IMG/VR virus record: IMGVR_UViG_3300017991_000002
Span: 124,001-188,000 of that record
Length of the DNA: 64,000 nucleotides
Reading direction: 5' to 3' (one strand)
Below, in pieces: positions 1-50,005 of this stretch; position 1 is the first letter of the stretch, and each line of letters starts with the position of its first letter. A model generated the notes under the pieces. The model was not told the DNA's origin. It worked only from the letters and a program-made list of their open reading frames with translations, and searched no databases. A program made the translations under genes and the position numbers.

Positions 1-8
1 CACAGGAG

Positions 9-251
9 GTGGAGATATTTGCTCACGTTTTCCTTAATGATCGGCCTCTTCTTGGAAGAATAAAAAATGCCATAAAATATATCTTCGGGTATAAGTGCCG
101 GTATGGTCATTGGGACGAATTTATCACAAATGATCCCGAGGAGGTAAAAAGATTACGGGATATGTGCAATAAGTTTCTTGAGCTAAGTGATGAAACACTT
201 CCCAAGGAACTGAACAAAAATAGAAAAATAAGACTTGGAGGAGAAGAATGA
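9..251 (+). CDS. Hypothetical phage protein (may start upstream of the window)
   Basis: 80-aa ORF. The GTG start directly abuts AGGAG at the window edge; the stop overlaps the next start (ATGA). Confidence 0.6.
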   Translation: MEIFAHVFLNDRPLLGRIKNAIKYIFGYKCRYGHWDEFITNDPEEVKRLRDMCNKFLELSDETLPKELNKNRKIRLGGEE

Positions 252-709
252 GGAAGAAGACAATAACAACCAAATACCACAAGATTACCAGAGAGTGGTG
301 GTTTGATGTAGTTCCCCTCACGAAAGTGGGAGGGTTTATGGACTATTGTTTGGAGGCTATTTCTGATATCTACCCCCTCCCTGATGAGAAGATTGTTGTC
401 GAAATAGGGTTTAAAGAAGGGAATTATGTCGAGAATGGAGGCTACATGATAAAAATAGCCAATAATTTTGGAGAGAAGCTATCCTCATACTCATGCTTTG
501 CAGCAGCAGTGAGAATGGGCGATGCGTTCGAAGATGTATTTCCTCACGATTTTATTGACAGCCTTATTCATAAGATACAGAAAGATATGAGATCTGAAGG
601 GATCAGGGGATGGCTGAGGGAGTTCTTCTGGTTCAGTTCACATTGGTTTCGGTCGGCTCCTTTGAATAGGGGATCAAAGAAGAGGTTGAAAAGGAAGTCA
701 AAGTTATGA
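248..709 (+). CDS. Hypothetical protein
   Basis: 153-aa ORF with GGAGGAG SD, translationally coupled at both ends (ATGA overlaps). Confidence 0.7.
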   Translation: MRKKTITTKYHKITREWWFDVVPLTKVGGFMDYCLEAISDIYPLPDEKIVVEIGFKEGNYVENGGYMIKIANNFGEKLSSYSCFAAAVRMGDAFEDVFPHDFIDSLIHKIQKDMRSEGIRGWLREFFWFSSHWFRSAPLNRGSKKRLKRKSKL

Positions 710-1110
710 GGTTCCTAAAGGCGGTATTGAAGAGACTGACTCTGACGATTCCTGTAAGAAGATTATTTTTGAGGTCGATAAGAAGGGATCATCGGGTTAA
801 GATGTTTGTCGTATCCAGAAGAGACATCCCTCAACACTATCGAACAGTTTGCTACCTTCATGCGGTGTCCCTAATGACCTCCCGCCTGAAGTACACAAAA
901 CGATGTGCTCGATGGGATCCTGATGTCAATATTATCGTTCCTTTGCTTACTGATGATCATCACAGCCTTCGGGAACTGCAGCATTACTTGAAAGGTACCC
1001 TTGGCTGGTCAGTTGCCTCCTGGGAAACTCCGTATGGCGTCGGCGCCTTCGCCTTTATCGCTGGAGATGAAGAGGCTATAACAATAATCGATAATCTTAC
1101 AATTGCCTGA
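706..1110 (+). CDS. Putative PTH2-like (peptidyl-tRNA hydrolase II fold) protein, diverged
   Basis: The pattern KMFVVSRRDI..Y..V..LHAV ... W ... NIIV.L..D...L..L...L ... WE.PYG..AFA ... IDNLTI resembles phage PTH2-like proteins. Recognised by eye only. Confidence 0.4.
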   Translation: MRFLKAVLKRLTLTIPVRRLFLRSIRRDHRVKMFVVSRRDIPQHYRTVCYLHAVSLMTSRLKYTKRCARWDPDVNIIVPLLTDDHHSLRELQHYLKGTLGWSVASWETPYGVGAFAFIAGDEEAITIIDNLTIA

Positions 1111-1134
1111 ATGAGGGTATGAGAGGTTTATTTA

Positions 1135-1422
1135 ATGACCCAACCTATGTGGATAAAGGAAGCTGCTGCCTTAGCTATCAGCAGAGTACGATTTGAAGGG
1201 GCATACTTTAATGAAGGAACTGAAGAGGTGAGAAGAATTACAAAAGGCTTTGTCGAATCTTGGATTGTTCCTATTTTGAGGTCGATAAGAGATAGAGATA
1301 GTGAGACGGCCAGGTGTTATTTAGAGGGGGAGGAGAAGTACATCAATCATGGTATGGAAGACGGGAAGAATCAAAAGTCGTATTATGAAAGTCCCCGTAT
1401 TATATCATCCACCCCTTTGTAG
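1135..1422 (+). CDS. Hypothetical protein
   Basis: 95-aa ORF with GAGG SD, followed by a terminator. Confidence 0.65.
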   Translation: MTQPMWIKEAAALAISRVRFEGAYFNEGTEEVRRITKGFVESWIVPILRSIRDRDSETARCYLEGEEKYINHGMEDGKNQKSYYESPRIISSTPL

Positions 1423-1437
1423 TATAACAAAAAACGG

Positions 1438-1491
1438 AGCCCTTGGAAGGCCAGTAGTTTCAACCCTATCCGCCTTCTGGGGGCTTTTTTT
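1438..1491 (+). terminator. Intrinsic terminator between convergent genes, possibly bidirectional
   Basis: 14-bp stem AGCCCTTGGAAGGC/GCCTTCTGGGGGCT (three G-U pairs), 20-nt loop, T7 tract; an A-run lies upstream. Confidence 0.75.
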
Positions 1492-2914
1492 ATGCCTTCT
1501 GGGTAAGCTTGGAGAATATCGGATACCAGTTATGCTGCTCAACAAGACCATACTTGAGGTGCCATAGCATACACTGAACGTTTCTCAGGTTTATGTATCC
1601 CTTCATCTTCGTCCAACGACTTGGAATAACCAGGGTTGGCAAACACCTGAACAGGATTCCTTGTCTGTCTTCAACCAACTGATGATGGAAGTGGCCCGTG
1701 TGCCATTCGTGAAACTGAGTTTGGGCCCAAGCCTCCTTCATTTCGTTTGTCATGAGGCTATACAGGCGTTCCTTCTTTTCCTGGTCCCCGTGGCAGAAAC
1801 CGATGAGATTATTACCAAAATGATAATACTTCCTCATCATGGGTCTGTTTTCCACGGTAACATTATCATCGCTTCTGTACCAACAATGAAGCGCATCCCC
1901 GAGGTGGAACATTCTGTCCGGTGCGTGGTTGTCGAGAACTACAATGACCTTTACGGGGCCCAATTGACGGCACATGTCTATTATCTTAACCCACATCTCC
2001 CGACATTTTCGAAAGATCTTTGGCTCTCTTCCTTCCTCGTCTTGCGGTGTACCCCTAGCCGTTGTTTTATCCTGTGTATTGACATTGAATAAATCGTTCC
2101 CTGTCGGCAGTATGATCTCGTGGAGATCAAGATGACTGATCCTGGCAAGCTGGTGTTCCACTGACTTAATAGCCAACTTCTCTGCTATTTTTATGTCATA
2201 GTTTTCGCCGGTCTCTTCCCACCAGGACAGAAGTCCATAATGAATATCGACGAGTGGAACCTCGTAGACATATTCGCCGTCATCTCCTAAGATAAGATTG
2301 AAGTCTTCATATACCTTTGGAGAGTGTTTCTGCATGTCATCAACTTGATCGCTGATTATCTTAGACAGCTTTACCTCTTCAACCTTATACCTGAACTTTG
2401 CTTTAATGTGGGTAACAACTTTGGTTATCAATTCAGGCTTTCTGACGCTAAACCCTGTCATCTTACCATCTTCCCAAGAGAGATCCTGATCGCGGTAGTT
2501 TGTGTATATCGTCTGACGGGATATTGTCTTGTCGACAAGTTCCCACTTATCCATATCTATCTTGTACTTCTCAACAAGCTCGTCTACACTATGGATTTCA
2601 GTTGATTCACTCTCAAGATGGATCTCCTTCTCTCCTTTCGTATTAATGGTTTCCCTGATCGTGGAGTCGTCCTTGTCTAGACATGTCTTTGGATCCTTTT
2701 TCATCTCTCTTCTGAGAGTACTTTGACCATTATCCAAGACAGGCTTAACGTATCGATAGAGAACCCCATGAATGGATCCTGGGGTACAGTTAATATTGAA
2801 CTCTTTGTTCAATTCCCTTGCTATAACCTTGGATTTTCTAATCCCCTTGGCATATAGCTCCCTGACCTTATCGACATATTCTGGATGCTCTTTCCAATAT
2901 GACGATGCCATCAA
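1490..2914 (-). CDS. Calcineurin-like metallophosphoesterase with N-terminal HTH-like domain
   Basis: Metal-ligand motifs DIHYG, GNDLFN, DNH, HGD and HTGHFHH in canonical order; helical N-terminus (VRELYAKG...VIARELN). Confidence 0.75.
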   Translation of the reverse strand: MMASSYWKEHPEYVDKVRELYAKGIRKSKVIARELNKEFNINCTPGSIHGVLYRYVKPVLDNGQSTLRREMKKDPKTCLDKDDSTIRETINTKGEKEIHLESESTEIHSVDELVEKYKIDMDKWELVDKTISRQTIYTNYRDQDLSWEDGKMTGFSVRKPELITKVVTHIKAKFRYKVEEVKLSKIISDQVDDMQKHSPKVYEDFNLILGDDGEYVYEVPLVDIHYGLLSWWEETGENYDIKIAEKLAIKSVEHQLARISHLDLHEIILPTGNDLFNVNTQDKTTARGTPQDEEGREPKIFRKCREMWVKIIDMCRQLGPVKVIVVLDNHAPDRMFHLGDALHCWYRSDDNVTVENRPMMRKYYHFGNNLIGFCHGDQEKKERLYSLMTNEMKEAWAQTQFHEWHTGHFHHQLVEDRQGILFRCLPTLVIPSRWTKMKGYINLRNVQCMLWHLKYGLVEQHNWYPIFSKLTQKA

Positions 2915-2930
2915 AACCTCCTTGATAGGG

Positions 2931-3164
2931 TTAATACAGGTCTACTTCATACTCATTAAGGATGGCAATAAACCAATCCCTGATCCTTCCTACCAACTCC
3001 TCAGGGGTCAGATTTATCATATCCTTGGGTAGACCATGCTTGTCCCAAGACTTAAGCTGGGACTCTGTAGCCTGTAAAGCAGAAAGATATGTTCCAGCAT
3101 TCATGGCTATTTTAAGCTCTTCAGCCTCTTCCGGTAAGTTAAACGTCACACTCCACTCTGGCAT
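2931..3164 (-). CDS. Hypothetical protein
   Basis: 77-aa ORF with AAGGAAGGAG SD and an upstream sigma70-type promoter. Confidence 0.7.
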   Translation of the reverse strand: MPEWSVTFNLPEEAEELKIAMNAGTYLSALQATESQLKSWDKHGLPKDMINLTPEELVGRIRDWFIAILNEYEVDLY

Positions 3165-3186
3165 TGGATTCTCCTTCCTTTATAGG

Positions 3187-3215
3187 AAGATAGCATATCC
3201 GATCGAATTTGTCAA
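3187..3215 (-). promoter_or_regulatory. Sigma70-type promoter, leftward
   Basis: TTGACA (3215-3210), 17-nt spacer, TATCTT (3192-3187); the SD and ATG of 2931..3164 follow. Confidence 0.7.
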
Positions 3216-3222
3216 ATATTTG

Positions 3223-3251
3223 TTGACAAAATCATCCATTGGTTCTATATT
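3223..3251 (+). promoter_or_regulatory. Sigma70-type promoter, rightward
   Basis: TTGACA (3223-3228), 17-nt spacer, TATATT (3246-3251). Confidence 0.75.
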
Positions 3252-3428
3252 TTTAGTATGGAAGAGAGACACGAGGTTATACCGGAGGTGAAAACACCAA
3301 TAATAGAAGGCGAAATTTTGGTATGTGTCAAAAACGCAAAATAATACGAAAAAATTTTTCTTTTTTCTGTTCAGAAACGTATAAGTATAGTAGAGACCTT
3401 TAACCTCAGTCCACGAAAGGAGACATCC

Positions 3429-3704
3429 ATGGACAAAAAAGATTTGATTGAGGGCATTGTTTTTGAAAACGAGAACGTGTCCAAAGCACAGGCTGGTCGT
3501 ATTGTGGATGCCATCACAGACATGATGGTAGAGGCTATTTCCGATGGAGAAGAGGTGAAGCTCGGAACATTCTGCAGGCTCTCTCCTTATATAAGGTCGG
3601 CCAGAACGGCAAGAAATCCACAGACCGGTGAAACTATCCAGTGCCCGGCAAAAAGATCCGTCAGGTTTAAGCCTTTGAAGCAATTGAAGGAAGCACTGGC
3701 ATAG
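3429..3704 (+). CDS. hup: HU/IHF-family histone-like DNA-binding protein
   Basis: 91 aa: MDKKDLI...SKAQAGRIVD...GEEVKLGTF...RSARTARNPQTGETIQCPAKRSVRFKP..LKEAL. AAAGGAG SD. Confidence 0.95.
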   Translation: MDKKDLIEGIVFENENVSKAQAGRIVDAITDMMVEAISDGEEVKLGTFCRLSPYIRSARTARNPQTGETIQCPAKRSVRFKPLKQLKEALA

Positions 3705-3707
3705 GAG

Positions 3708-3736
3708 AAGGGGCGGGAGACCGCCCCTTTATTTTT
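3708..3736 (+). terminator. Intrinsic terminator after HU
   Basis: AAGGGGCGG-GAGA-CCGCCCCTT followed by TATTTTT. Confidence 0.85.
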
Positions 3737-3762
3737 AATACCTTGACGTATTTGGAGGTCTC

Positions 3763-3999
3763 ATGGCAACCATTAAGTCAGAATACAGAAGAAAGACCAG
3801 TTCATTAAGAATATTGAGAGCCCTTAGAAGACAGGGGGCATCAAAGGTATCCCTCCTGAAAAACTATCTAAACATAGACTCATCACTGTCAAGGATACTT
3901 AAGACACTACTCAAGAGGGGCTATGTGGAGAAGGTTGAGCGAGGGGTATATCGAATCACAGAAGATGGAATAAAAAAGCTTGAAGAAGAAAACTTTTAG
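3763..3999 (+). CDS. Winged-helix DNA-binding protein
   Basis: 78 aa: SLSRILKTLLKRGYVEKVERGVYRITEDG is a wHTH recognition helix plus wing. GGAGG SD. Confidence 0.75.
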   Translation: MATIKSEYRRKTSSLRILRALRRQGASKVSLLKNYLNIDSSLSRILKTLLKRGYVEKVERGVYRITEDGIKKLEEENF

Positions 4000-4102
4000 G
4001 ACCCGGTATCTAGTCGTGGGAGAGTCCTATGTTGACACCAAAAACAAGAAAACTTTCATTATGCGATATCTGTTGTGGTAGCAGATTACCGGGTCCTTTT
4101 TT
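3999..4102 (+). ncRNA. Candidate structured RNA or attenuator
   Basis: 10-bp perfect inverted repeat GGACCCGGTA/TACCGGGTCC encloses two G-U-containing hairpins and an A-rich linker, then T6. Confidence 0.45.
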
Positions 4103-4116
4103 CCGAGGAGAGATAG

Positions 4117-4779
4117 GTGATGGATAAAAACGAACTCGCGGATAAACATGAGGAGGTCGATCAACTCCGGGCTTATAGGGTAGAAGAAGATTTACCTGTG
4201 GATGATTATAGAGTCCAGTTACGTGTAAAAAATAACTATTTCCTGACGGCCATGGATCGGGCTGGTATAGCATCGATTGCCGAGCTTTCCAGAATGACGG
4301 GAATTGATCAAGGCGCTATCGGAAAGTTTGTAAATCTCAAGATGTCGCCGTATAAGTCAAGAACGGGCGAGCTTCGTACAAATATCCGTAAACTATGCGA
4401 CGTAATGGGGGCCTCTGTTGAAGACCTGTTTCCTCCGCAGCACTTGTATTCTCCACTACCAAGAAACACGGCGACTATGACCTTGCCTCTGCACAGTATT
4501 AAGAGTCTTATCCACTACAGTGACCAAGAGGTCCTACAGTTGATCAGTCGTAAAGAGGAGATAGATGCCGTACGGCAGGCCTTACAGACGGAGATAGACC
4601 CTCGTCAGGCGACGGTGGTCATGATGTATCACGGAATAGGGGAGTATGAAGGTAGGAATTATACCTATGACCAAATCGCACAACATCTTAATATCTCAGG
4701 AAGCCGTGTCGGGCAGATACTGGACAAAGCATACCGTAAACTTAGACAGTGCCCACTGTTCACAGAATACAGGAGATAA
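4117..4779 (+). CDS. XRE-type HTH plus sigma-70 region 4 domain protein
   Basis: N-terminal SIAELSRMTGIDQGAIGKFVNL; C-terminal DPRQATVVMMYHGI...TYDQIAQHLNISGSRVGQILDKAYRKLR. Confidence 0.8.
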   Translation: MMDKNELADKHEEVDQLRAYRVEEDLPVDDYRVQLRVKNNYFLTAMDRAGIASIAELSRMTGIDQGAIGKFVNLKMSPYKSRTGELRTNIRKLCDVMGASVEDLFPPQHLYSPLPRNTATMTLPLHSIKSLIHYSDQEVLQLISRKEEIDAVRQALQTEIDPRQATVVMMYHGIGEYEGRNYTYDQIAQHLNISGSRVGQILDKAYRKLRQCPLFTEYRR

Positions 4780-4837
4780 CGATATTCCGGACTATGCACG
4801 GAACGACATCAAACATTTATCGAGAAGGAGGTTTAAC

Positions 4838-5116
4838 GTGTTCTTGAAAATAAGCAATAGACTAATCAATACCGAGGGTATATCGGATATATATTTGGAA
4901 GTAGCCCCGGGTATAATGGAGATGATACTGATCGAAGGGGGCAGAATTATGCTCATCAGTAATGATGTTGATAAGGATTCCCTAAAGCTTGATGACTATG
5001 ACGGGGAGGTTTTGTTCCTCAGTCCCGGGGAGTATGAGGGAGTCTCCAACCATTTTAACAGCATAGCTTTGAACCTCTCACCGCACAAGGATGAGGACAA
5101 AAAGGATGGCGAGTAG
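4838..5116 (+). CDS. Hypothetical protein (start revised to GTG 4838)
   Basis: AAGGAGG SD upstream of GTG TTC TTG AAA, in frame with track ORF 4646..5116. Confidence 0.65.
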   Translation: MFLKISNRLINTEGISDIYLEVAPGIMEMILIEGGRIMLISNDVDKDSLKLDDYDGEVLFLSPGEYEGVSNHFNSIALNLSPHKDEDKKDGE

Positions 5117-5372
5117 ACGAGAAACTCGTATAACTGGTGATCAGGATGTTGTAGTCGTCTTTAACTGTAAAGACTTTTTCATTAATGACAAATGCATAGA
5201 AGATATAATCCTGGATACTATCAGGAAAAGATTAAAGACGATAGACCTAGAGAGCAATCGTGCCGTGTCCAGTAAACTGATTACATCCATTATCGAGAGC
5301 TTGGAGACCGATTCTGGGAAAAATAAGTCTACAATAAGAAGATTACGTGTAAAGGGAAAATCATGCTCGTAA
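5091..5372 (+). CDS. Hypothetical protein
   Basis: 93-aa ORF coupled to its neighbours; start uncertain. Confidence 0.6.
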   Translation: MRTKRMASRRETRITGDQDVVVVFNCKDFFINDKCIEDIILDTIRKRLKTIDLESNRAVSSKLITSIIESLETDSGKNKSTIRRLRVKGKSCS

Positions 5373-5767
5373 AGAAGATAGAGGTACCTATCTATAAACA
5401 CTTTTTGGTCTTTATAACCGACTGTGACTATTCAGGCTTGAGGACTTACCTGTCTGAGGAATATGAGATCGATTGGCTGCCTGAAAATGGAAGCTGTGGG
5501 CGCTCGTTCAAATTAGAGGCCACAACAGGGGCAATGATGTACTTTATTTGGATGAGAAAGTATGATAACCTTGTAGAGGATCATGTCACATTGTCCCATG
5601 AAATATCACATCATGTTTTCTGGATGTTCAACGATCTTGGAATGACCAGAACCAAAGATTCCGATGAAGCCTATGCCTACTATGATGGGTGGGTTACAGA
5701 GGAGATACTAAAAGCCCTGAATGAGTATAGGTTAAATAAAGGATCCGGGGAAGAGGGGAAAGAATGA
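5363..5767 (+). CDS. HExxH-motif protein (possible zinc metallopeptidase fold)
   Basis: TLSHEISHHVF followed by SDEAYAYY. Confidence 0.55.
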   Translation: MLVKKIEVPIYKHFLVFITDCDYSGLRTYLSEEYEIDWLPENGSCGRSFKLEATTGAMMYFIWMRKYDNLVEDHVTLSHEISHHVFWMFNDLGMTRTKDSDEAYAYYDGWVTEEILKALNEYRLNKGSGEEGKE

Positions 5768-5931
5768 ACAGAGATAAGAAGATAATAGTGGCTCTTGCTG
5801 CTTCCACAATAACACTACCCATAATCTATCGGTATCACCAAGAAATCGGGGTATCAATACTCGGGGTGGCGGCAAGAGTGGCCCATAAAATGGAAGAACG
5901 TTTAAGAAGGTATGCAGGAGGCATAACATAG
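5764..5931 (+). CDS. Small hypothetical protein (55 aa, below the ORF-track cutoff)
   Basis: The ATG overlaps the previous stop (ATGA); GAGGGG SD; fills the gap to the next gene. Confidence 0.5.
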   Translation: MNRDKKIIVALAASTITLPIIYRYHQEIGVSILGVAARVAHKMEERLRRYAGGIT

Positions 5932-5961
5932 AAACCAGTCCAACCATAGAAGGAGATTTTT

Positions 5962-6384
5962 ATGGAGTATGAAGAGTTTAAAGCAAAAATGGATGAGCTC
6001 CTGGTAGACTATAAAGAGTTTATTTTATGGCTCAAGGATAACATCCACAGTCTAAAAGATCTCATCTCTCACTTTGCAGAGGTTATACCGAAGGTCGTTC
6101 TCATCTGGGCAGCCACCAAGGCAGTGGCCGAACAGATGCATGATCTGCCTTCCTCTATCCAGAGACATTACTTTGCCCTGTACCTGGATGATCTGTTCGA
6201 ATTCCAGAACGTTATTCTGGAAGGTATCGATCGATACGTCTTTGAGGTTATCTTTTACTTCTGTGAGTACTTCGGTGACTACCTGTTCCCGGGCAAGAAA
6301 TCGGTCGAGTTTAAGGATATGGCACAGAAAATTTTGTCAACCCCGACGAAAAAGAAGGTCAAGTTCAAAGTCGTCGCCAAATAG
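5962..6384 (+). CDS. Hypothetical helical protein
   Basis: 140-aa ORF with AAGGAG SD and a terminator downstream. Confidence 0.75.
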   Translation: MEYEEFKAKMDELLVDYKEFILWLKDNIHSLKDLISHFAEVIPKVVLIWAATKAVAEQMHDLPSSIQRHYFALYLDDLFEFQNVILEGIDRYVFEVIFYFCEYFGDYLFPGKKSVEFKDMAQKILSTPTKKKVKFKVVAK

Positions 6385-6394
6385 AACCCCATCC

Positions 6395-6433
6395 GGTAGC
6401 GGCCGTAAGCCTCCTGCTGCCGCTACCTTTTTT
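6395..6433 (+). terminator. Intrinsic terminator with 15-nt loop
   Basis: GGTAGCGGC/GCCGCTACC 9-bp stem followed by T6. Confidence 0.8.
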
Positions 6434-6444
6434 AGGAGACTGGA

Positions 6445-6606
6445 ATGGCCAAAATAACAAAATGCGTAAGGACCATAGATTATACGTATCAGGAGCTGGA
6501 AGAGGAACTCACCAAGTTATTTGCTGAGGGGTGGAAGATAGAAACATCGACCGCCGCCACTATTATTCTCACAAGAGATAAAACTCCTCAGGAATTGTTG
6601 GACTAA
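6445..6606 (+). CDS. Small hypothetical protein (53 aa)
   Basis: AGGAG SD; MAKITKCVRTIDYTYQELEEELTKLFAEGWKIET...; the stop overlaps the next ATG. Confidence 0.6.
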   Translation: MAKITKCVRTIDYTYQELEEELTKLFAEGWKIETSTAATIILTRDKTPQELLD

Positions 6607-7019
6607 TGATAATAGATAAGGTAATAGATATGCAGCTCAGTATGCTTCTTCAGGATATGGACATATGTGCCAGGAAGTATGAGGTCGAGGAGTACGAAAA
6701 ACTTGCATTAATGAGACACGTTATCTTACGGGAGATGCAGTACGGAGAAGAGATGTTTACCTGGATATTTGCTCTGGAGAACGGCCTCCTCTCCAAGAAA
6801 ATCCAGGAAGACTGGGCAGACAGTATAGAAGCAGAGCTTGATAAACATGGCTTAACTGCCGTATATCATGATTGGGATGAGGAGAAGGACAGCAAGGCTG
6901 TTGATAGGATAAACGAACTTCTAAAAGAAGGATGGAGCATAAAATCGCACAGGTATTGGACCACGTTATTAACCAAAAAACCTGTAAGCATAAAAAACAT
7001 AGAAACATCGGTTCAGTAA
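6606..7019 (+). CDS. Hypothetical protein
   Basis: 137-aa ORF coupled to the upstream small ORF. Confidence 0.7.
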   Translation: MIIDKVIDMQLSMLLQDMDICARKYEVEEYEKLALMRHVILREMQYGEEMFTWIFALENGLLSKKIQEDWADSIEAELDKHGLTAVYHDWDEEKDSKAVDRINELLKEGWSIKSHRYWTTLLTKKPVSIKNIETSVQ

Positions 7020-7087
7020 ACAAATGTCCCGCACGGACACTTTCTACGGTAGACATTATATGACGCTATCAGAAAGGAGATTTTACG

Positions 7088-7840
7088 ATGTATATAAATG
7101 GCTTCTCCGTAAGGATACCACAGGGTTTCGAGCAAAATGGCTACATTCTCATGAAGCATGAGACTGTCTACACAATCCGACTCAGAAATACTCGAGAGGA
7201 ATTGTGTGATGCTTATGTTGAAATAGACGGCCAATATGTTGGAACCTGGCAAATAGAACCAAAAAGCTCCCTGGAACTAGAACACCCGGCCAATGACGAC
7301 GGTCGATTTACGTTCTATACAGTGAGCTCGAAGGCAGGAAAGCAAGCCAACCTTCCCACAAGAGATCCCAATCTTGGGCTCATCAGGGTAACATTTACCC
7401 CAGAATTAGCATCGTTCCAGGGTTTATCCGAGGGTGTAAAGTTTCCCACATCCGATGCTGTGAGAACTTACTGGTATGGAAGAGATCCTACTCCGGGTCG
7501 GATTATTGATCCCGCTATTACTTGAACATATTCTGGCAGCAGTGCAGTTATGTATTGCAGTTCCGGGGGACCCCAGTCATGTAACCTCTCCCCGGAATCC
7601 CAAGCAGGGGGAACAGGATTGTCCGGTAAAAGTGAGCAGGAGTATGATGCTCAAGATCCTGTATCGAATCCAGATACCGAGCAGCAGACAGTTATACAGG
7701 TAAGACTCGTTGAGAAGGAAATGTCCAAAGGTCCGAGGCAACTTATCGCCTCAAATTCTACCCCTTATCCTCCCCCATTGCCTGTTGGCAGAGGAGGGAG
7801 AACAGTAACCACCAGAAAATTGAATCTGGACAGTGATTAA
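7088..7840 (+). pseudogene. Single hypothetical gene interrupted by an in-frame TGA (7523-7525): nonsense allele or readthrough
   Basis: ORFs 7088..7525 and 7550..7840 share a frame and only one TGA separates them. The first ATG has an AAAGGAG SD; ATG 7550 has none. Confidence 0.6.
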
Positions 7841-7882
7841 ACCTCGGTCCGTGCGGGGCCCTTTTTACAGAGGAGAAAATAT

Positions 7883-8050
7883 ATGGAACATATCTCACGA
7901 GCAATTTGTGGCTCCGTAGCATTTGCTGCCGCAGCCGCTCTCATTATTATTAAGGGGAGTATTGCGTGGCCTATTGTCTTTATTTTCGTTGGCTTAGCTG
8001 TTATGTCTTCATCTTTGGGAGGAGAGGAAGAGGAGAAGAAGGATGGTTAA
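7883..8050 (+). CDS. Small membrane protein (55 aa, two hydrophobic segments)
   Basis: AGAGGAG SD; AICGSVAFAAAAALIII-K-GSIAWPIVFIFVGLAVM followed by an acidic tail. Confidence 0.65.
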   Translation: MEHISRAICGSVAFAAAAALIIIKGSIAWPIVFIFVGLAVMSSSLGGEEEEKKDG

Positions 8051-8321
8051 GACAAGAAGACCAGTCTTTTATACCATAAAAAAGAGTGAATTCTTGTTTG
8101 AAGAGATGAATCGTATAGGGCTGAAGTTGAAGAATATGAGGGATATGGTTACATCGGACAGAAGAATATCGAAAAGAGAATGGGAGGAGTTTATACTGAA
8201 TTCTGCAGAGTCTCAGAAGATGATAAAGGATTGGACAAAATGTGTGGCTGTTTTGAAAGAGACCATAAATGATCAGAGAATAAAACCAAATAAAGAGGAG
8301 ATTGAGAGTGATGATATTTGA
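8043..8321 (+). CDS. Hypothetical protein
   Basis: 92-aa ORF with GAGGAG SD, overlapping both neighbours. Confidence 0.7.
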   Translation: MVKTRRPVFYTIKKSEFLFEEMNRIGLKLKNMRDMVTSDRRISKREWEEFILNSAESQKMIKDWTKCVAVLKETINDQRIKPNKEEIESDDI

Positions 8322-8547
8322 CCTGGAAAGACTTGAAGATAAGTGGTGTCCATACATCAGAATCACTGTGCTCGAGGATGGGAGATTTTTGTCTAATAGG
8401 GGAGAGATAGCACACCCTGAGGAGTCAAAAACACTCTGCCAATGCATAGGACCAAAATGTATACTCTGGGAATGGGATGTAGTGAATAAATCCGGGTACT
8501 GTTCAGGGTGTAAGGATGATGAAATGATTTCAAGGGATTACTCATGA
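8311..8547 (+). CDS. Cys-rich hypothetical protein
   Basis: WCPY...CQCIGPKCILWEW...GYCSGC; ATG 8311 follows GAGGAG. Confidence 0.6.
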   Translation: MIFDLERLEDKWCPYIRITVLEDGRFLSNRGEIAHPEESKTLCQCIGPKCILWEWDVVNKSGYCSGCKDDEMISRDYS

Positions 8548-8740
8548 ATTCCGATCACGAAGCCAACACCAATATTTGTATTGTAGAGCTATCCTTCATC
8601 GATGGGTTATTTTTTGATTTATTGTCCTTCTGCATCGGGGGAATGTTCTATTCTATGCTTTGTGTTTCACTAACACTACACAGTATTTATTTGGAGGTCT
8701 TTGGAGTTACTTTGATAGACCTCTAAGAAAGGAAATAGGA

Positions 8741-9460
8741 ATGAAAATCTTAAAGAACGGAACAATCGTTACTGATCATCGACTTGACCGCATCCCAAGC
8801 TTCGATAGAGAGAGTAGGAAGTTCTGTATTACTTCCCGCCTCGAGACATCAGCTCCTATTCAAACAAAGATGTGGGAATTGGAACACTACCTGGATCAGG
8901 GACAGGAGGGGGCATGTGTAGGATTTGGTATTTCCCATGAGCTATTGGCCACGCCTAAAGACGCCCCTTATCCTTATGTCAATAACGAGTATGCAAAGGA
9001 ACAGATCTACTGGGAAGCACAGAAGATCGATCCTTGGCCAGGCGGTGCATACCCTGGAGCCAGCCCTTTTTATGAAGGCACTTCAGTCCTGGCTGGTGTT
9101 AAAATAGCCAAGAGCATTGGCTGGTTCGACTCATATTACTGGGCATTCTCCCTGAATGATCTGATGAAGGGAGTATCACAGGAAGGTCCAGCTGTCTTGG
9201 GAGTTAATTGGTATGAAGGTATGATGGATACCGATGCAGCCGGGTATATAAGGCCTACGGGCTCTTGCATAGGTGGTCACTGTATCTGTGCAATAGGGAT
9301 CAATAAAGAAGATGAATACTTTACCCTTCACAATTCCTGGGGGGACTGTTGGGGAGATGATGGTCGATGTCGTATATCCTTTGCTGATATGAGGAGACTC
9401 CTGAACGAGAATGGCGAGGCCTGCTTTTTTGTCGGCCGGCATGTAAAATTACCGAGGTGA
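8741..9460 (+). CDS. Papain-family (C1) cysteine peptidase
   Basis: DQGQEGACVGF (oxyanion Gln and catalytic Cys), GGHCI (His), HNSWG (Asn). Start at ATG 8741 after AAAGGA. Confidence 0.9.
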   Translation: MKILKNGTIVTDHRLDRIPSFDRESRKFCITSRLETSAPIQTKMWELEHYLDQGQEGACVGFGISHELLATPKDAPYPYVNNEYAKEQIYWEAQKIDPWPGGAYPGASPFYEGTSVLAGVKIAKSIGWFDSYYWAFSLNDLMKGVSQEGPAVLGVNWYEGMMDTDAAGYIRPTGSCIGGHCICAIGINKEDEYFTLHNSWGDCWGDDGRCRISFADMRRLLNENGEACFFVGRHVKLPR

Positions 9461-9463
9461 TAC

Positions 9464-9937
9464 ATGTCTGAGTATAAGAGACCTGGCACTTTAGCGGGAG
9501 AAACGGATAAATTGACCACAGGATGCGGCAATCTCTACGTTACCCTAAACAAAGACAAGGGAGGAATAAAAGAATGTTTCTGCGTCTTGGGGAGATCAGG
9601 AGGTTGCCCAGCAGCACAGACTGAAGCAATAGGCCGTCTTATATCCCTTATGCTAAAAGAAGGGGTTTCCAGAAAAGAAATTGCCCAACAGTTAAGAGGG
9701 ATACGTTGCCACAGTCCCCATACTGAGGAGGGTACTGAAGTTCTATCCTGTGCGGATGCTATAGGAATTGCTATGGCCAGAAGATCTGGAATGGCTGTTC
9801 AGGTCGAAAAGGAAATGACATCCGAGAAAAAAGATATCGAGCCATCTAGGGGGGCTTGTCCTGACTGTGGCTCCGCCGTGGTGTATCAGGAAGGTTGTTT
9901 AAAGTGTATGTGTTGTGGCTATAGTGAGTGCGGATAG
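9464..9937 (+). CDS. Stand-alone TSCPD-domain protein (NrdJb-like C-terminal part of class II ribonucleotide reductase)
   Basis: TGCGNLYVTLN, GRSGGC..AQTEAIGRLISL.L, QLRGIRC, LSCADAIG, and a C-terminal Zn ribbon CPDCG...EGCLKCMCCGYSEC. Confidence 0.85.
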   Translation: MSEYKRPGTLAGETDKLTTGCGNLYVTLNKDKGGIKECFCVLGRSGGCPAAQTEAIGRLISLMLKEGVSRKEIAQQLRGIRCHSPHTEEGTEVLSCADAIGIAMARRSGMAVQVEKEMTSEKKDIEPSRGACPDCGSAVVYQEGCLKCMCCGYSECG

Positions 9938-9950
9938 GAAGGGGTATGTT

Positions 9951-10178
9951 ATGAGAATTGAAAGGGAGAAAGGGTCTAATTGCAAAGGTATAATGGGATT
10001 ATTATTCGGCCATAACTTTGTCCCCTGCTATAACAGAACAATAATTCCTCCATCTCTTCACGGAGCCCGTCTTGAAGGGAGTATCAAGGAAATGATTAAA
10101 GCTCTCTCTAAAGTGGAGGAGAGATATGTTCACAGTATTTGCAGAAGGTGCGGGAAGGTAATTAATGAGAAGGGTTAA
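9951..10178 (+). CDS. Hypothetical protein with C..GH / CRRCG motifs
   Basis: In frame with track ORF 9915..10178; start revised using the GGAAGGGG SD. Confidence 0.55.
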   Translation: MRIEREKGSNCKGIMGLLFGHNFVPCYNRTIIPPSLHGARLEGSIKEMIKALSKVEERYVHSICRRCGKVINEKG

Positions 10179-10179
10179 G

Positions 10180-10401
10180 ATGAAGACTTCTACATTATTA
10201 TGTGATAGCGTAAACCCTTACGATCCAGATATCCATTGCGATAGACCTCTCGGTCATGATGGATTTCATAGAAGCGGGTTTGCACGATGGGGAAGTAGAG
10301 GATCGGGGGATAACCATATACCGAGCATATGTGACTACAATCATTATAGAGATTACGATCACTCAGTGTTAGGAGGCATGCATGAGATCAAGAAGAACTG
10401 A
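10180..10401 (+). CDS. Small His/Cys-rich hypothetical protein
   Basis: In frame with track ORF 10165..10401; contains HCDRPLGHDGFH. Confidence 0.5.
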   Translation: MKTSTLLCDSVNPYDPDIHCDRPLGHDGFHRSGFARWGSRGSGDNHIPSICDYNHYRDYDHSVLGGMHEIKKN

Positions 10402-10732
10402 TTTGGATCTTTCAACGGTTCAGTTTAAGACGAGTATCAACCTTAGTATCATTAAGGAAACTGAGGAGGCGTGCAGGGGCATTACTACTGACCACGAAAA
10501 GGAGGAAAGGCTGAGCAAGCCTGAGTGCCGTACGTGCCACTACATCAGGAGATCCAGGATAGGCGGAGCTGCAATGACCCAGGCATTATGTTCCTTCTGT
10601 GGAACAGAAATGATGTTTAGTAATACCTGTGTTGATGTCCTTTGTCCAGACTGTGCAAAGAAGCACGAATTGTGTAAACATTGTGGAGGCGACCTGAGGG
10701 ATAGAATGAGAAGGAAGCTGGAAAGAAGGTAA
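10382..10732 (+). CDS. Multi-CxxC zinc-finger protein
   Basis: CRTC, CSFC, CPDC and CKHC motifs; AGGAGG SD. Confidence 0.7.
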   Translation: MRSRRTDLDLSTVQFKTSINLSIIKETEEACRGITTDHEKEERLSKPECRTCHYIRRSRIGGAAMTQALCSFCGTEMMFSNTCVDVLCPDCAKKHELCKHCGGDLRDRMRRKLERR

Positions 10733-10737
10733 TCATC

Positions 10738-11736
10738 ATGCAAGACCCTGCATTCAATTATGAAATAATGATCAATGATCCTGTACGATTGCTTATACTT
10801 GAAAGTATTAAGAAGATTACCAGTGATCCTGTAGAGGTTAGAAGAAATTCGGCAGTTATTCATTACAGCAGGATACCCGAAATAGTGTCAGTTATCTGCC
10901 CTTTCGGTGAAGATCAATTTCAGATAGCCTCTGCCGCTCATGCTTTTCCAGCCATCTCCACAAGAATGGGTACGATTCCAGTACATTATGACACATATCA
11001 CAACCGGGCTATTCACGATATGAGCTTTGACTCCCTGGCAAAGGAAATTGCCTTTCAGATCGATAAGAGGTGTTTGGATCTTATGGAGGATTCTGCATGT
11101 TTTAGAAGGCACTGTCCTATGGAAATAATCCTTGATAACGATACCAATCGCCGATATTTTCTTGAGGGGTATCTTGAGGACACTTTATTTGAGGTCATCA
11201 GTCGTGTAATACAGCAAAGCAGTTATCCCTCAACATTCATGGTTACTGGAGATGCCATAGCAAGGATGTTGAGACATTCTAACCACTTCATGGATTCCAG
11301 TATAACTGAAGGCCCGCCCTCTAGGTCAGAGGGGTATATTCGACACTTCGGGAATTTAGGGAATTGTACTGTATATTCAAGCCCCTTGAGGACGAATGGA
11401 ACTACTTTGATCGGGTCTTTAAGTCCACATAGTTGTCGCCAAGGAGACAGATCATTTGACTGCGGTTTCGTTTATGCTCCATATCTTCCGTTGTCATCGG
11501 TACCAGTATCCATTCCGGCCAATGCTTGGATGGAAATATCGTCACTACGACCCAGAGGGATAGAAAGTCGATACGGAGCGGTTGTTGTTAACCCAAACTT
11601 CTATGCTACCCTTCACTTCGATGTCCGTAACTCAGAAGAGCTTTTATCTGTACCGTCTACAAAACCACCTTACTATCCTAAACCAACCAAGATAGAGTAT
11701 AAAAGAAAGTTAAAGGTGATAAGAAGCAATGGTTAA
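10738..11736 (+). CDS. Diverged T4 gp23/gp24-like capsid-fold paralogue
   Basis: EIAFQIDKRCLDLM and GFVYAPYLPL...GIESRYGAVVVNPNFY align by eye with EELKFEIDREIIRDL and GYIYAPYIPL...ALGTQYGKKVVWDKFY in this window's major capsid protein. Confidence 0.75.
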   Translation: MQDPAFNYEIMINDPVRLLILESIKKITSDPVEVRRNSAVIHYSRIPEIVSVICPFGEDQFQIASAAHAFPAISTRMGTIPVHYDTYHNRAIHDMSFDSLAKEIAFQIDKRCLDLMEDSACFRRHCPMEIILDNDTNRRYFLEGYLEDTLFEVISRVIQQSSYPSTFMVTGDAIARMLRHSNHFMDSSITEGPPSRSEGYIRHFGNLGNCTVYSSPLRTNGTTLIGSLSPHSCRQGDRSFDCGFVYAPYLPLSSVPVSIPANAWMEISSLRPRGIESRYGAVVVNPNFYATLHFDVRNSEELLSVPSTKPPYYPKPTKIEYKRKLKVIRSNG

Positions 11737-12187
11737 TGAACATCGTCCCATAAGGATTCTTGTTGAGGAATGGAACGGCTTCTTATCAGTACTGACTCTT
11801 GAGCACTTGAGCACTGATCAATTTGAGGGGAGAGCTGTCGAGATAATAGATGGATCCGAGCTTTGCCATCGGGGAGGGTGTGAGTGGTGCGACAGGCTTA
11901 GGTATCTTTCTGAAGATAGATTTACATTAGTGTGCAGGGGATGCGGAAAGGTTCTTGATCAGGATAATGACGATTATATAGCCTTCAAAGGAAATGTTAC
12001 AAGAGGATGGACAGGTGGTATCATAGGTCCCAACCTTACCCAACAAAACAGACTGAAGAACGTATCTGTATGGTGCATGGACTGTCGCCTTGTTCTCCTG
12101 AACTACCTTGGCGATATGTTCGAATTGAACGCCCCTCCTCTTAAAAAACCATCCTATCAGTTTAAAAGAAAATTGAGGATTGTATGA
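11729..12187 (+). CDS. Zinc-ribbon hypothetical protein
   Basis: CEWC, CRGC and CMDC motifs; coupled to its neighbours. Confidence 0.65.
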   Translation: MVNEHRPIRILVEEWNGFLSVLTLEHLSTDQFEGRAVEIIDGSELCHRGGCEWCDRLRYLSEDRFTLVCRGCGKVLDQDNDDYIAFKGNVTRGWTGGIIGPNLTQQNRLKNVSVWCMDCRLVLLNYLGDMFELNAPPLKKPSYQFKRKLRIV

Positions 12188-12495
12188 GTCTCGAAGAACT
12201 AAAGTGTCCTGATCTCTTGCCCTGCCCATTCTGTGGGGGTGAGGCTTTTCTGTTAAAAGGACACGTAATTGTAATTCCAGGAATAAGCTATATGCTGTGG
12301 GGAGTCGGGTGTAATAATGGTACCGAACTTTGCTACTGTCTCCCCGATAAGAACCTCTTAATGTGGGGAACTCAAGAAGAAGCAATAAGCGCATGGAATA
12401 AGAGAAGTATCATAGGCAACGAAAAGTCCGACACTGCCTCCAGAAAGCTAATCCCTGATAAAGACAGGAAGAGAAAGATCAGGATTCCTTCCTAA
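12184..12495 (+). CDS. Lar-family restriction alleviation-like protein
   Basis: LLPCPFCGGEA ... GC...C ... EEAISAWNKR signature. Confidence 0.75.
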   Translation: MSLEELKCPDLLPCPFCGGEAFLLKGHVIVIPGISYMLWGVGCNNGTELCYCLPDKNLLMWGTQEEAISAWNKRSIIGNEKSDTASRKLIPDKDRKRKIRIPS

Positions 12496-48415: not shown

Positions 48416-50005
48416 TTATCTCCAACCGTGTTTCTTGATAACTTTTCTTGCCAGGACCGCTGAAGAATTGTCCTGGACATCCTCCATGAGCCAACTTTCA
48501 TCATCCTCGTTAAAGTCCAAGGAATCCCCATCACCTTCTTGTCCTTCATACAAGTATCGAGATCCGCCTGTCGGCAGGGGCTCCAAGTCCATTCCTCTCC
48601 CGGAAACTACTGGTGATCCCAATGCTTCCCGGTAACCTTCCAACAAGTTAAGTGTCTGCACCATCTCCTCTTGGCTCTGGCACTGCTCCAGGATAGGTTT
48701 CAGAAACTCGGCATGCGGGTGGTCTTCGAGGATCCCCTCAAGATACGATGTGATCTGGGCCTCGTTCCCTTTTTCGAGCACGGATTCTAAGACATCTACA
48801 GATGCATTGTACTTCTCGGTTATGTCTTCGAGAGCTCCTTCCAACTGCTCTGCATACTCTGACAAAGACTCGATCTGCTTTTCTTGTTCTTCCAATCCTT
48901 CTGCCACTTCAGCAGAGCCCTCTTCGACTCTCTCTTCAAGCCTAGTCGTCAGCTCTTCGATGATTGCTTCAGATGCACCCAATTCCTCTTCCAAGGCGTT
49001 ATATGATTCAGCCATTTCACGGAATCGGTTCTTCATTTCATCGATGACGGCGACAGAGGCATTATACTTCCCCTGGATCTCGTTGAGAGTGCTTTTATCT
49101 TCTACGATAGCAGCCATCTGCTCTTGAAGAAGTTCAACATTCTCATTGATTACTTTATTATCCAGAGTACCATTTTCTTTCTCTTTCGGCATGGTATTTC
49201 CTCCTTCGGATATATTTTTACACTCTTCAGTCCCGTATGGTATCTTGGGTTGAATCAGTTCGTTTGCTTGTGATATCTCCTCTCGCAAAATGGAAACGAC
49301 GTCCTTCGTGCCTTCGGCATCCAGTCCATCGGTGTTCTCTATACTCATAAGGGCACATCTGTGCTCCTCTAATTTCAACGACATCTCAACCAGCTCGGCA
49401 GTTTCCTTTTCTTCCAAATCCTCGAGGTCAAGCCCTTTAAGATAATTGCTTATCTCCTCGAGCTTTGACACTGCCTCTACCGGGGAGAACTCAATACTTT
49501 CTGACAAAACTGCTGGAAAGGCGCCGGCAGTTGAAGGGTTGGCCACGAAGTCCCACGTCTCCAATTTATAATCGTCTTGAACGATCGGTTTGTCCCTCCC
49601 AAGGCTGCCAGTTCCTCGTGAAGAGATACCGACTCGAGTTCCGCCTTTAAACAGTTCTTGGAGTATTTTCCCGTTCGGGGTATCGAGAATTTCTGCCTCC
49701 CCGATTATAGTTCCATCGTCCTGAATATCGACTCCGGTAATTATGTGGGAGACCCTTTGAAGAGATGTTTTACCAGAACTCGGATGGTCCAACTCCCCGA
49801 ACATCCCTCGATTATCAAGCCTATCCCTAACTTTTTGCTCTTTGAGCTTTTTTCCGAACAGACCGTTCGGATAGATCCTACCGTTCTCGTTCTGAACACC
49901 TTCACGTTGGAAGACGCCTTTGACCTTCATCCGCTTCGATCCGTCGCCTTCCTCCAATATCTGGTATTGGAACGGTATCACATCAATAAGTAGTTGCTCT
50001 GTCAT
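48416..50005 (-). CDS. Prohead protease (gp21-like) fused to a coiled-coil scaffold (gp22-like)
   Basis: GVFQREGVQNENGRIYP, GELDHP, RVSHII, ILDTPNGKIL, GISSRGTGS, WDFVANPS; then about 300 aa of acidic coiled coil. Confidence 0.93.
   Translation of the reverse strand: MTEQLLIDVIPFQYQILEEGDGSKRMKVKGVFQREGVQNENGRIYPNGLFGKKLKEQKVRDRLDNRGMFGELDHPSSGKTSLQRVSHIITGVDIQDDGTIIGEAEILDTPNGKILQELFKGGTRVGISSRGTGSLGRDKPIVQDDYKLETWDFVANPSTAGAFPAVLSESIEFSPVEAVSKLEEISNYLKGLDLEDLEEKETAELVEMSLKLEEHRCALMSIENTDGLDAEGTKDVVSILREEISQANELIQPKIPYGTEECKNISEGGNTMPKEKENGTLDNKVINENVELLQEQMAAIVEDKSTLNEIQGKYNASVAVIDEMKNRFREMAESYNALEEELGASEAIIEELTTRLEERVEEGSAEVAEGLEEQEKQIESLSEYAEQLEGALEDITEKYNASVDVLESVLEKGNEAQITSYLEGILEDHPHAEFLKPILEQCQSQEEMVQTLNLLEGYREALGSPVVSGRGMDLEPLPTGGSRYLYEGQEGDGDSLDFNEDDESWLMEDVQDNSSAVLARKVIKKHGWR

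Follow-up and report, generated by a model that had tools for sequence, protein, structure and literature searches.

Short terminal peptides that send many unrelated proteins to one machine are known in cells, where they include signal peptides, PTS1, encapsulin cargo tags, and adaptor tails. In phages, they are known for a handful of proteins. [quoted passage not shown] XB binds ClpX with a KD of about 65 nM regardless of its position in the polypeptide, still binds when fused to other sequences, interacts with ClpX in a way that is conserved across bacteria, and is sufficient to deliver a bound protein to ClpXP for targeted degradation (PMC12373786). ClpX, a host AAA+ unfoldase, also recognizes the C-motif-2 degron of the phage Mu transposase MuA, which ends in NRRKKAI-COOH (PMC12723719).

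Other systems use terminal peptides for assembly or docking. C-terminal peptides on flexible linkers are the usual way that cargo is targeted to HK97-fold shells, as with the encapsulin cargo-loading peptides and the HK97 protease tail, and phage T4 uses a capsid-targeting sequence that is N-terminal and cleaved. In T4, the unrelated proteins gp43, gp33, and gp55 share a C-terminal peptide that docks to the ring-shaped gp45 clamp. Genome-wide C-terminal signals are also found in Agrobacterium-type T4SS export and in sortase and exosortase sorting.

A C-terminal tag in a sediment phage

A 205,367-bp phage genome from a sediment metagenome carries a comparable peptide. The original prediction, made from a 64,000-nt window of this genome (positions 124,001 to 188,000 of IMG/VR record IMGVR_UViG_3300017991_000002), described a shared R-[KR]-[LI]-[RK]-[LIV] tail on five unrelated accessory proteins, mostly after a Pro/Lys-rich linker. 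All five tails were found where they had been placed, so the observation is confirmed, and a sixth, previously unlisted, lies in the same window (Table 1). The gp23-like and Lar-like fold assignments also hold. The scale, however, was underestimated. Across the complete genome, 72 six-frame ORFs, or 68 of 333 strand-aware gene calls, carry R-[K>R]-L-[R>K,N]-[I/V/L/M] 0-12 residues (mode 2) before the stop codon. A PSSM scan gives about 70 genes with fewer than 1 false positive expected, which is roughly 20% of the proteome.

Table 1. Features of the phage genome discussed in the text (window coordinates unless marked as genome).
Coordinates	Strand	Feature	Tag and position	Residues before stop	Remarks
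1..251	+	3' part (ORF 9..251) of a 121-aa tagged accessory gene	RKIRL, 222-236	4	Gene starts upstream of the window
3353..3398	+	Promoter-like element			T-rich tract followed by AGAAACGTATAAGTATAGTAG; one of nine copies
4117-4779		Sigma-like protein	RKLRQ (borderline)		
5091..5372	+	93-aa tagged accessory gene	RRLRV, 5337-5351	6	
7550..7840	+	96-aa ORF	RKLNL (variant), 7814-7828	3	The sixth tail
8738..9460	+	Papain-family (C1) cysteine peptidase			Gln/Cys/His/Asn catalytic motifs intact; cathepsin-B-like
10738..11736	+	332-aa paralogue of the C-terminal half of the gp23-type capsid protein	RKLKV, 11704-11718		Pfam Gp23, 4.4e-10; tag after a P/K-rich linker; no homologue in a 5.8-billion-protein database
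11729..12187	+	152-aa Cys-rich (zinc-ribbon-like) protein	RKLRI, 12167-12181	1	AGG-A of its Arg-Ile codons lies at Shine-Dalgarno distance from the next start codon
12184..12495	+	103-aa Lar-like protein	RKIRI, 12472-12486		Pfam Lar_restr_allev, 3e-08, residues 10-74; tag in a 29-residue extension; last gene before a convergent gene, so no downstream ribosome-binding site can explain its tag
48416-50005 (genome 172416-174005)		S77 prohead protease	None		
Genome 63580-66027		ATPase-deficient LonC-type protease			Directly before the tagged array starting at 66096

Chance does not explain the motif. Shuffling the last 17 residues gives a mean of 0.7 strict hits (maximum of 4 in 1000 shuffles) against 36 observed, permuted motifs have a median of 1 hit, and N-termini have 1. 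The motif is also read in the protein frame. When the motif-coding DNA pattern was sought in the last 51 nt of ORFs, 50 hits fell in frame 0, 1 in frame 1, and none in frame 2. Leu uses all six codons and is never replaced by Phe, and position 1 is Arg in 57 tails and Lys in none. Among the 72 tagged proteins, only 6 pairs are paralogues, and the proteins hit 7 different Pfam families.

The tag is found on a Pro/Lys-rich linker. The 15 residues before it are enriched 2.5x in Lys and 2.4x in Pro relative to the protein bodies and are depleted in aromatic and aliphatic residues. Disorder-promoting residues account for 63% of the linker against 45% of the bodies. Tags occur only in the accessory gene arrays, with 0 in the structural modules (136-205 kb and 0-11 kb of the genome) and 0 among the genes of the replication module (92-122 kb). 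The promoter-like element heads the tagged arrays and the replication genes but is absent from the structural module. The single close orthologue found, P0178 (63% identity), keeps RRLRM while its flanks diverge. More distant homologues essentially lack the tag, as do 729 kb of other phage and metagenome loci, which contain 8 hits, one of them the true orthologue.

Candidate partners of the tag

The original prediction inferred a docking or localization code that recruits diverse proteins to one partner or compartment, with the T4 clamp-docking peptides as precedent. This interpretation is only partly supported: a general docking or localization code is the reading that best fits the evidence, but the precedent does not apply. 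The analysis itself establishes that the tails are non-random, frame-locked, and conserved at the amino-acid rather than the nucleotide level, that the tag is retained in the only close orthologue, the one pair examined, that the tails follow a linker of distinctive composition, and that they are restricted to accessory arrays sharing a promoter-like element with the replication genes. Binding to a common partner, and the identity of that partner as a protease or unfoldase hub, are inferred from sequence alone.

In the favored model, the tails are a short linear motif, a hook of R-[K/R]-L-[R/K]-[I/V/L/M] often followed by x-[K/R], on a disordered leash of 10-20 residues rich in Pro, Lys, and Glu. 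The hook would have been added to the C-termini of about 70 otherwise unrelated small non-structural proteins and would bring all of them to one partner, possibly ClpX. On this reading, the tagged proteins are either self-delivering short-lived proteins or adaptor-like degraders of the host proteins they bind. This model remains tentative, with a probability of about 0.4. A ClpX zinc-binding domain is present in 10 of 14 control bacteria, though the phage itself encodes none. Of the 72 tails, 13 end exactly in L-[RK]-hydrophobic-x-[KR]-COOH and 21 contain that pattern, with K/R at position +2 in 44% against a 13% background, but the two most invariant tag positions, Arg1 and Lys/Arg2, correspond to Pro-Ala in XB. 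In addition, the related UmuD tether is L-R-E-I, which puts the hydrophobic residue one position later than in the tag.

The second candidate partner is the phage's own LonC-type protease, which is encoded immediately upstream of one tagged array. Identified by Pfam and PDB matches, it has an intact GDSAS catalytic serine with the family-wide GTGR P-loop and no true phage homologue in 50,697 phage records. The link between LonC and the tag rests on this single genome. LonC-type proteases lack unfoldase activity and have no known degron (PMC3391209, PMC13069640). Moreover, if LonC is co-transcribed with its presumed substrates, there is no obvious temporal switch.

A more speculative and unlikely possibility is that the phage carries a natural arsenal of PROTAC-like degraders. 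Each of the roughly 70 small proteins would bind a different host protein, or a protein of a rival phage, through its variable domain and deliver it through the common tail to host ClpXP or the phage LonC. This would be the natural counterpart of the engineered XB-linker-bait 'CLIPPER' peptides, and the tagged fragments of capsid protein and prohead protease would then be baits for homologous proteins.

Sequence-string and topic searches of the literature returned no report of a phage in which one fifth of the proteome, and specifically the orphan small 'host-takeover' genes, carries one tag. The tag gives an experimental handle on about 70 proteins of unknown function at once, with one peptide and one pull-down. 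If the partner is a protease hub, it would reveal either programmed instability of a whole gene class or virus-encoded targeted degradation in bacteria. It would also provide a compact, portable tag for synthetic biology.

Alternative readings

The hook-on-leash anatomy, the many unrelated carriers, and the conservation in the orthologue fit any docking partner equally well. Docking to another single hub or compartment without proteolysis is possible, though less likely than the favored model. Candidates include the nucleoid or phage DNA, the ribosome, RNA polymerase, a condensate scaffold, or a phage protein of unknown function, and the strongly basic tag could contact nucleic acid or an acidic surface. 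However, a replication factory or nucleus-like compartment would be expected to recruit replication enzymes, none of which is tagged, no scaffold candidate was recognized by Pfam, and a 5-residue motif with invariant Arg and Leu points to a specific pocket rather than generic electrostatics. It is unlikely, though not excluded, that the tag is a capsid-targeting signal that loads the proteins into proheads for injection with the DNA, to act before gene expression starts. The Lar-like restriction-alleviation protein would profit from being injected, and tagged paralogues of the capsid protein and the prohead protease exist. Against this, the structural module has no tags, the authentic prohead protease lacks one, the promoter-like element is shared with replication and not structural genes, and the cargo would comprise 68 different species with slightly acidic bodies.

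The remaining readings are very unlikely. Leu-Arg is the classical P2-P1 preference of papain-family peptidases, which makes the phage C1 peptidase a weak candidate for an enzyme that clips, or transpeptidates in a sortase-like manner, the remaining 1-13 residues, whose variable length and sequence would be expected of a leaving group. Yet its closest phage homologue (43% identity, phage GX15bay) sits in a genome with no tags, and homologues in actinophages lie next to holin or membrane-protein genes, which suggests a lysis role. Removing 1-3 residues also has no obvious purpose, and the conserved Arg1 and Lys2 lie far from the scissile bond. The motif could instead act during translation, as a basic nascent peptide of the '+x+' type (RLR-like) that sits in the exit tunnel at termination, slows release, and promotes re-initiation on the overlapping downstream gene. 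Indeed, 43 of 67 tagged genes overlap the next start codon against 55 of 152 untagged genes, and the modal spacing puts the tag 2 codons before the stop. But at least 10 tagged genes, including the Lar-like gene, have no closely following gene, the distance to the stop varies from 0 to 12 codons, and those 55 untagged genes are coupled to the next gene without the motif. The strict Arg at position 1 and the Leu requirement are not features of '+x+' stalling. Finally, nucleotide-level signals (a Shine-Dalgarno sequence or A/G-rich 3' ends) and K/R-rich composition are refuted as a sufficient explanation by the frame-lock, the tail shuffles, the Leu and Arg usage, and the tags that have no downstream gene. 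AGR codons are over-used at position 1 (88% against 62% genome-wide), and AGG is enriched at position 4, where AGG-A can double as the Shine-Dalgarno sequence of the next gene. Such signals survive only as a secondary influence on codon choice and on the preferred distance to the stop codon.

Comparison with described terminal peptides

The T4 clamp-docking peptides resemble the tag in that unrelated proteins share a C-terminal peptide, but the T4 peptide is hydrophobic and acidic, not basic. Profile searches of the complete genome with PF09116 and PF00712 detected no gp45-type or beta-type clamp gene. The polymerase is PolA-type (family A), and no replication or late-transcription protein is tagged. 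The T4SS signal is also Arg-rich and genome-wide, but it is a loose R-x(7)-R-x-R-x-R charge pattern. Sortase-type signals are followed by a hydrophobic segment and a charged tail, whereas only 0-12 mostly polar residues follow the tag, only 3 of 68 tagged proteins have a TM-like segment, and no sortase-like family appeared in the Pfam scans.

Capsid and encapsulin peptides likewise load several or many unrelated proteins into one protein compartment, but those of encapsulin are hydrophobic or Gly-rich, and the cargo genes are late or lie next to the shell gene. The MuA degron shares with the tag a basic cluster followed by an aliphatic residue, but it sits at the extreme C-terminus, where only 2 of 72 tags are found. 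It has no conserved Leu and occurs on a single protein. The SspB tail is the closest known analogue. Both have a folded binding domain, a flexible linker, and a short basic-hydrophobic C-terminal peptide, and some tags carry a pattern like its L-R-hydrophobic-x-K, although the tag's invariant Arg1 and Lys/Arg2 are not XB features. The tag's second hydrophobic position is variable, however, and SspB is one protein per genome, whereas here about 70 mostly unrelated proteins carry the tail.

Distribution and anatomy of the C-terminal tag

The phage is represented by a complete virus record of 205,367 bp, in which the window spans positions 124001-188000. The record has direct terminal repeats, a CheckV completeness of 100%, and a G+C content of 45%, and it originates from a sediment metagenome (contig Ga0180433_10000036). 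The phage is a myovirus with a T4-like portal, a tail sheath, and a gp23-type capsid protein. By its sheath protein, the nearest database phage is Bacillus phage SP-15, at only 43% identity. The true gp23-type capsid gene is split into two halves (Pfam positions 5-183 and 185-354), between which lies an ORF with endonuclease-like PHROG hits. Bacillus phage SP-15 has the same arrangement, so this is probably an intron or intein with a homing endonuclease.

The original prediction placed a shared basic tail at the C-termini of five proteins, and this observation is confirmed and greatly extended. All five tails are exactly where they were placed, and a sixth, RKLNL, ends a further ORF of the window. 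The Gp23-like and Lar-like assignments are confirmed by Pfam and PHROGs. Applying the predicted pattern to every six-frame ORF of the genome gave about 60 hits, almost all within a few residues of a stop codon. With a slightly relaxed pattern, R-[KRV]-[LI]-[RKNTS]-[LIVM], 72 ORFs carry the motif 0-12 residues before the stop, with a mode of 2. This corresponds to 68 of 333 strand-aware gene calls. A PSSM scan gives 67-71 genes, with fewer than 1 false positive expected and almost nothing at borderline scores. Two borderline variants are a sigma-70-region-4 protein with RKLRQ 9 residues from its end and a 202-aa protein, encoded upstream of the LonC gene, that ends exactly in RKLRF.

Tagged genes fill the arrays of small genes at 11-92 kb and 122-136 kb, reaching 18 of 31 genes in one 10-kb bin. 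None lies in the replication module (92-122 kb) or in the structural module (136-205 kb and 0-11 kb). Tagged proteins are 40-250 aa long, apart from the 332-aa gp23-like protein.

The core of the tag is R-[K48/R20]-L66-[R50/K10/N7]-[I27/V21/L18/M6]. It is followed by weak preferences, with K/R at +2 in 44% of tails against a 13% background. The 15 residues upstream are 2.5x enriched in Lys and 2.4x in Pro, are depleted in aromatic and aliphatic residues, and are 63% disorder-promoting, against 45% in the protein bodies. The structure, as read from sequence, is therefore a hook on a leash. A single-sequence AlphaFold model of the Lar-like protein was too poor to use (pLDDT 43).

The carriers are essentially unrelated. 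A paralogous C-terminal domain was considered and rejected because only six weak paralogue pairs exist among the 72 proteins. Pfam hits are to seven different families (Gp23, Peptidase_S77, Lar, DUF932, ExoX-like_C, DUF1281_C, and a zinc ribbon), but most carriers are orphans. Only 3 of 68 have a TM-like segment. The accessory arrays also hold tagged paralogues of head proteins. One matches the C-terminal half of gp23, one is a weak prohead-protease (S77) relative (E 1.3e-4, below the Pfam cut-off), and one is a weak match to the gp23 N-terminus (E 1.8e-4).

Coordinates of the features discussed in the text (L002, L003, and L004 are loci of the phage genome)
Feature	Position	Strand
ORF ending in the sixth tail, RKLNL	window 7550..7840	
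Lar-like protein, tagged	window 12184..12495	
Tagged paralogues of head proteins	window 10738-11736; L003:13742-14296; L002:11996-12484	+; -; -
DUF932 protein, tagged	genome 73320-74063	
Gene end with an apparently dual-coding tag	window 12167-12187	
Sigma-70-region-4 protein, borderline RKLRQ	window 4117-4779	+
202-aa protein, borderline RKLRF	genome 62233-62841	+
Papain-family peptidase	window 8738-9460	
LonC-type protease	genome 63580-66027 (L004:9580-12027)	+
BCS1-like AAA ATPase	genome 24320-25777 (L002:6320-7777)	-
Second AAA ATPase	genome 58830-59993 (L004:4830-5993)	+
Two halves of the gp23-type capsid gene	window 45677-46168 and 47199-47852	-
ORF between the capsid gene halves	window 46235-47257	
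Promoter-like element, four copies	genome 58346, 95711, 117834, 127378 (one at window 3353-3398)	+
Promoter-like element, five copies	genome 52448, 45223, 41712, 36057, 23855	-

Sequence controls, conservation, and expression class

Neither chance, composition, nor an RNA-level signal explains the tag. Shuffling the last 17 residues of each protein yields 0.7 ± 0.8 strict hits (maximum 4 in 1000 shuffles) against 36 observed in the same gene set. Permuted versions of the motif have a median of 1 hit, and N-termini have 1. The DNA pattern that can encode the motif occurs in the last 51 nt of ORFs 50 times in frame 0, once in frame 1, and never in frame 2. Leu at position 3 uses all six codons and is never Phe, although TTY differs from TTR by a single transition. 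Position 1 is Arg in 57 tails and Lys in none. Ten tagged genes have no close downstream gene, including the Lar-like gene, which abuts a convergent gene. Conversely, 55 untagged genes overlap the next start codon without having the motif. An origin through a slippery site or frameshift fusion was dropped because the Leu and Arg codons vary.

On the frame, codon, and shuffle tests, a Shine-Dalgarno origin is rejected, and nucleotide context leaves only a secondary imprint on codon choice and on the preferred spacing to the stop. AGR codons are over-used in the motif, and AGG accounts for 56% of Arg codons at motif position 4, against 31% genome-wide. With the modal spacing, the AGG-A of the Arg-Ile codons lies about 7 nt before an overlapping ATG, so it can double as the Shine-Dalgarno sequence of the next gene. 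Some tags appear to be dual-coding.

The phage is nearly a singleton in public data. Single-protein scans of IMG/VR with three proteins found nothing close, and megablast against phage records found nothing. The gp23-like protein has no homologue in the 5.8-billion-protein database, and tblastn with the Lar-like protein against phage records found no match. A metagenome scan with the DUF932 alignment recovered only the source contig plus relatives at 29% identity or less. Only an exhaustive HMMER search with the tagged DUF932 protein produced one orthologue, P0178, at 63% identity over its full length, on a 1.8-kb Logan contig. Its tail reads …NNTHARRLRMV against …NNFRSRKLRIQ in this phage. 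All five motif positions stay within the allowed classes, while the five flanking positions differ. Homologues at 45% and 43% identity, and more distant ones, end without the motif. The tag therefore looks like a lineage-specific addition kept under selection. As a negative control, 729 kb of other phage and metagenome loci contain 8 tail hits, one of which is that orthologue, compared to 72 in the 205 kb of this genome. Literature searches for the peptide strings and for jumbo-phage C-terminal motifs returned nothing relevant.

A conserved promoter-like element, a T-rich tract followed by AGAAACGTATAAGTATAGTAG, lies 30-50 nt upstream of start codons and occurs nine times in the genome. The copies head the tagged accessory arrays, the replication genes, and the HU gene, and no copy occurs in the structural module. 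From this it is inferred that the tagged genes belong to the non-late class.

Candidate partners and interpretation

The phage encodes several proteins that are candidates for a partner of the tag on the basis of sequence and gene position. One is a LonC-type protease that matches Pfam AAA_32, LonB lid, LonC helical, and Lon_C, and PDB 4fwd at 1e-89. Its catalytic Ser motif (GDSAS) is intact, and its P-loop (GTGRR) is degenerate, carrying the GTGR that is degenerate family-wide. The gene lies directly upstream of a tagged array. The protein is about 50% identical to many bacterial proteins, and no genuine phage homologue exists in 50,697 phage records. All its homologues proved to be bacterial, so a phage copy is rare. 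These include the record CAKLQF020000018.1 ('Acinetobacter phage MD-2021a') of the phage collection, which carries ordinary chromosomal genes (efp, rpmE, cstA, ampG, dacA, tRNA-Val) and is bacterial chromosome, not phage. LonC enzymes lack unfoldase activity and have no known degron. The closest cellular homologues of two unrelated phage genes, LonC at 52% identity and DUF932 at 45%, lie on different contigs of the same metagenome-assembled bacterium (GCA_016934675.1), with the DUF932 copy in an SSB-RecT mobile-element context. This is a possible clue to the host lineage.

The phage also encodes two classical-clade AAA ATPases. One is a membrane-anchored BCS1-like protein with N-terminal hydrophobic segments, whose best PDB hits are mitochondrial BCS1. 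The other is 387 aa long, and only the first half of an AAA domain aligns in it. Four phage contigs carrying homologues of the BCS1-like protein (31-36% identity) have no tags. In addition, 50 kb of Bacillus phage SP-15 has none. Lastly, the phage encodes an intact papain-family peptidase. The phage encodes no sliding clamp, ClpP, SspB, or ClpX zinc-binding domain.

The interpretation in the original prediction is supported in part: a docking code is the best-supported reading, but the T4 clamp precedent offered for it is not supported. The favored reading is a leash-and-hook docking tag for a common partner, most probably a protease or unfoldase hub, with host ClpX as the first candidate and the phage LonC as the second. 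This is held tentatively, with a probability of about 0.4. The occurrence of the tag as a protein-level motif is shown by the analysis, while docking itself, the identity of the partner, and the non-late expression of the carriers are inferred.

Among the alternatives, docking to another hub is unlikely but is the strongest rival, followed by loading into the capsid. A processing site is more doubtful still. Leu-Arg fits the P2-P1 taste of the papain family, but the genome of the closest phage homologue of the peptidase (phage GX15bay) has no tags, and actinophage homologues sit next to lysis genes. An effect on translation is the least likely of these rivals. Within the favored reading, a more speculative possibility is that the phage carries a natural arsenal of adaptor-like degraders. 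Restriction alleviation of type I enzymes in E. coli involves ClpXP degradation of HsdR, which makes the tagged Lar-like protein a good first case for this possibility.

Comparison with ClpX-docking peptides

The closest known analogue is the SspB adaptor, which consists of a folded domain, a long flexible linker, and the C-terminal peptide RGGRPALRVVK (XB). This peptide binds regardless of its position in a polypeptide, has a KD of about 65 nM, and works with ClpX from bacteria that lack SspB. When fused through a linker to a bait, it is sufficient to have an untagged target degraded (PMC12373786). The ClpX N-domain is present in 10 of 14 control bacteria.

The tag resembles XB, but this is not membership. 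The invariant Arg1 and Lys2 of the tag have no XB counterpart, and the UmuD tether (L-R-E-I) places the hydrophobic residue one position later. On the other hand, thirteen tags end exactly in L-[RK]-hydrophobic-x-[KR]-COOH and 21 contain that pattern, and the variable distance of the tag from the C-terminus matches the position-independence of XB. The MuA degron, …NRRKKAI, is a second basic-aliphatic ClpX signal on a phage protein (PMC12723719).
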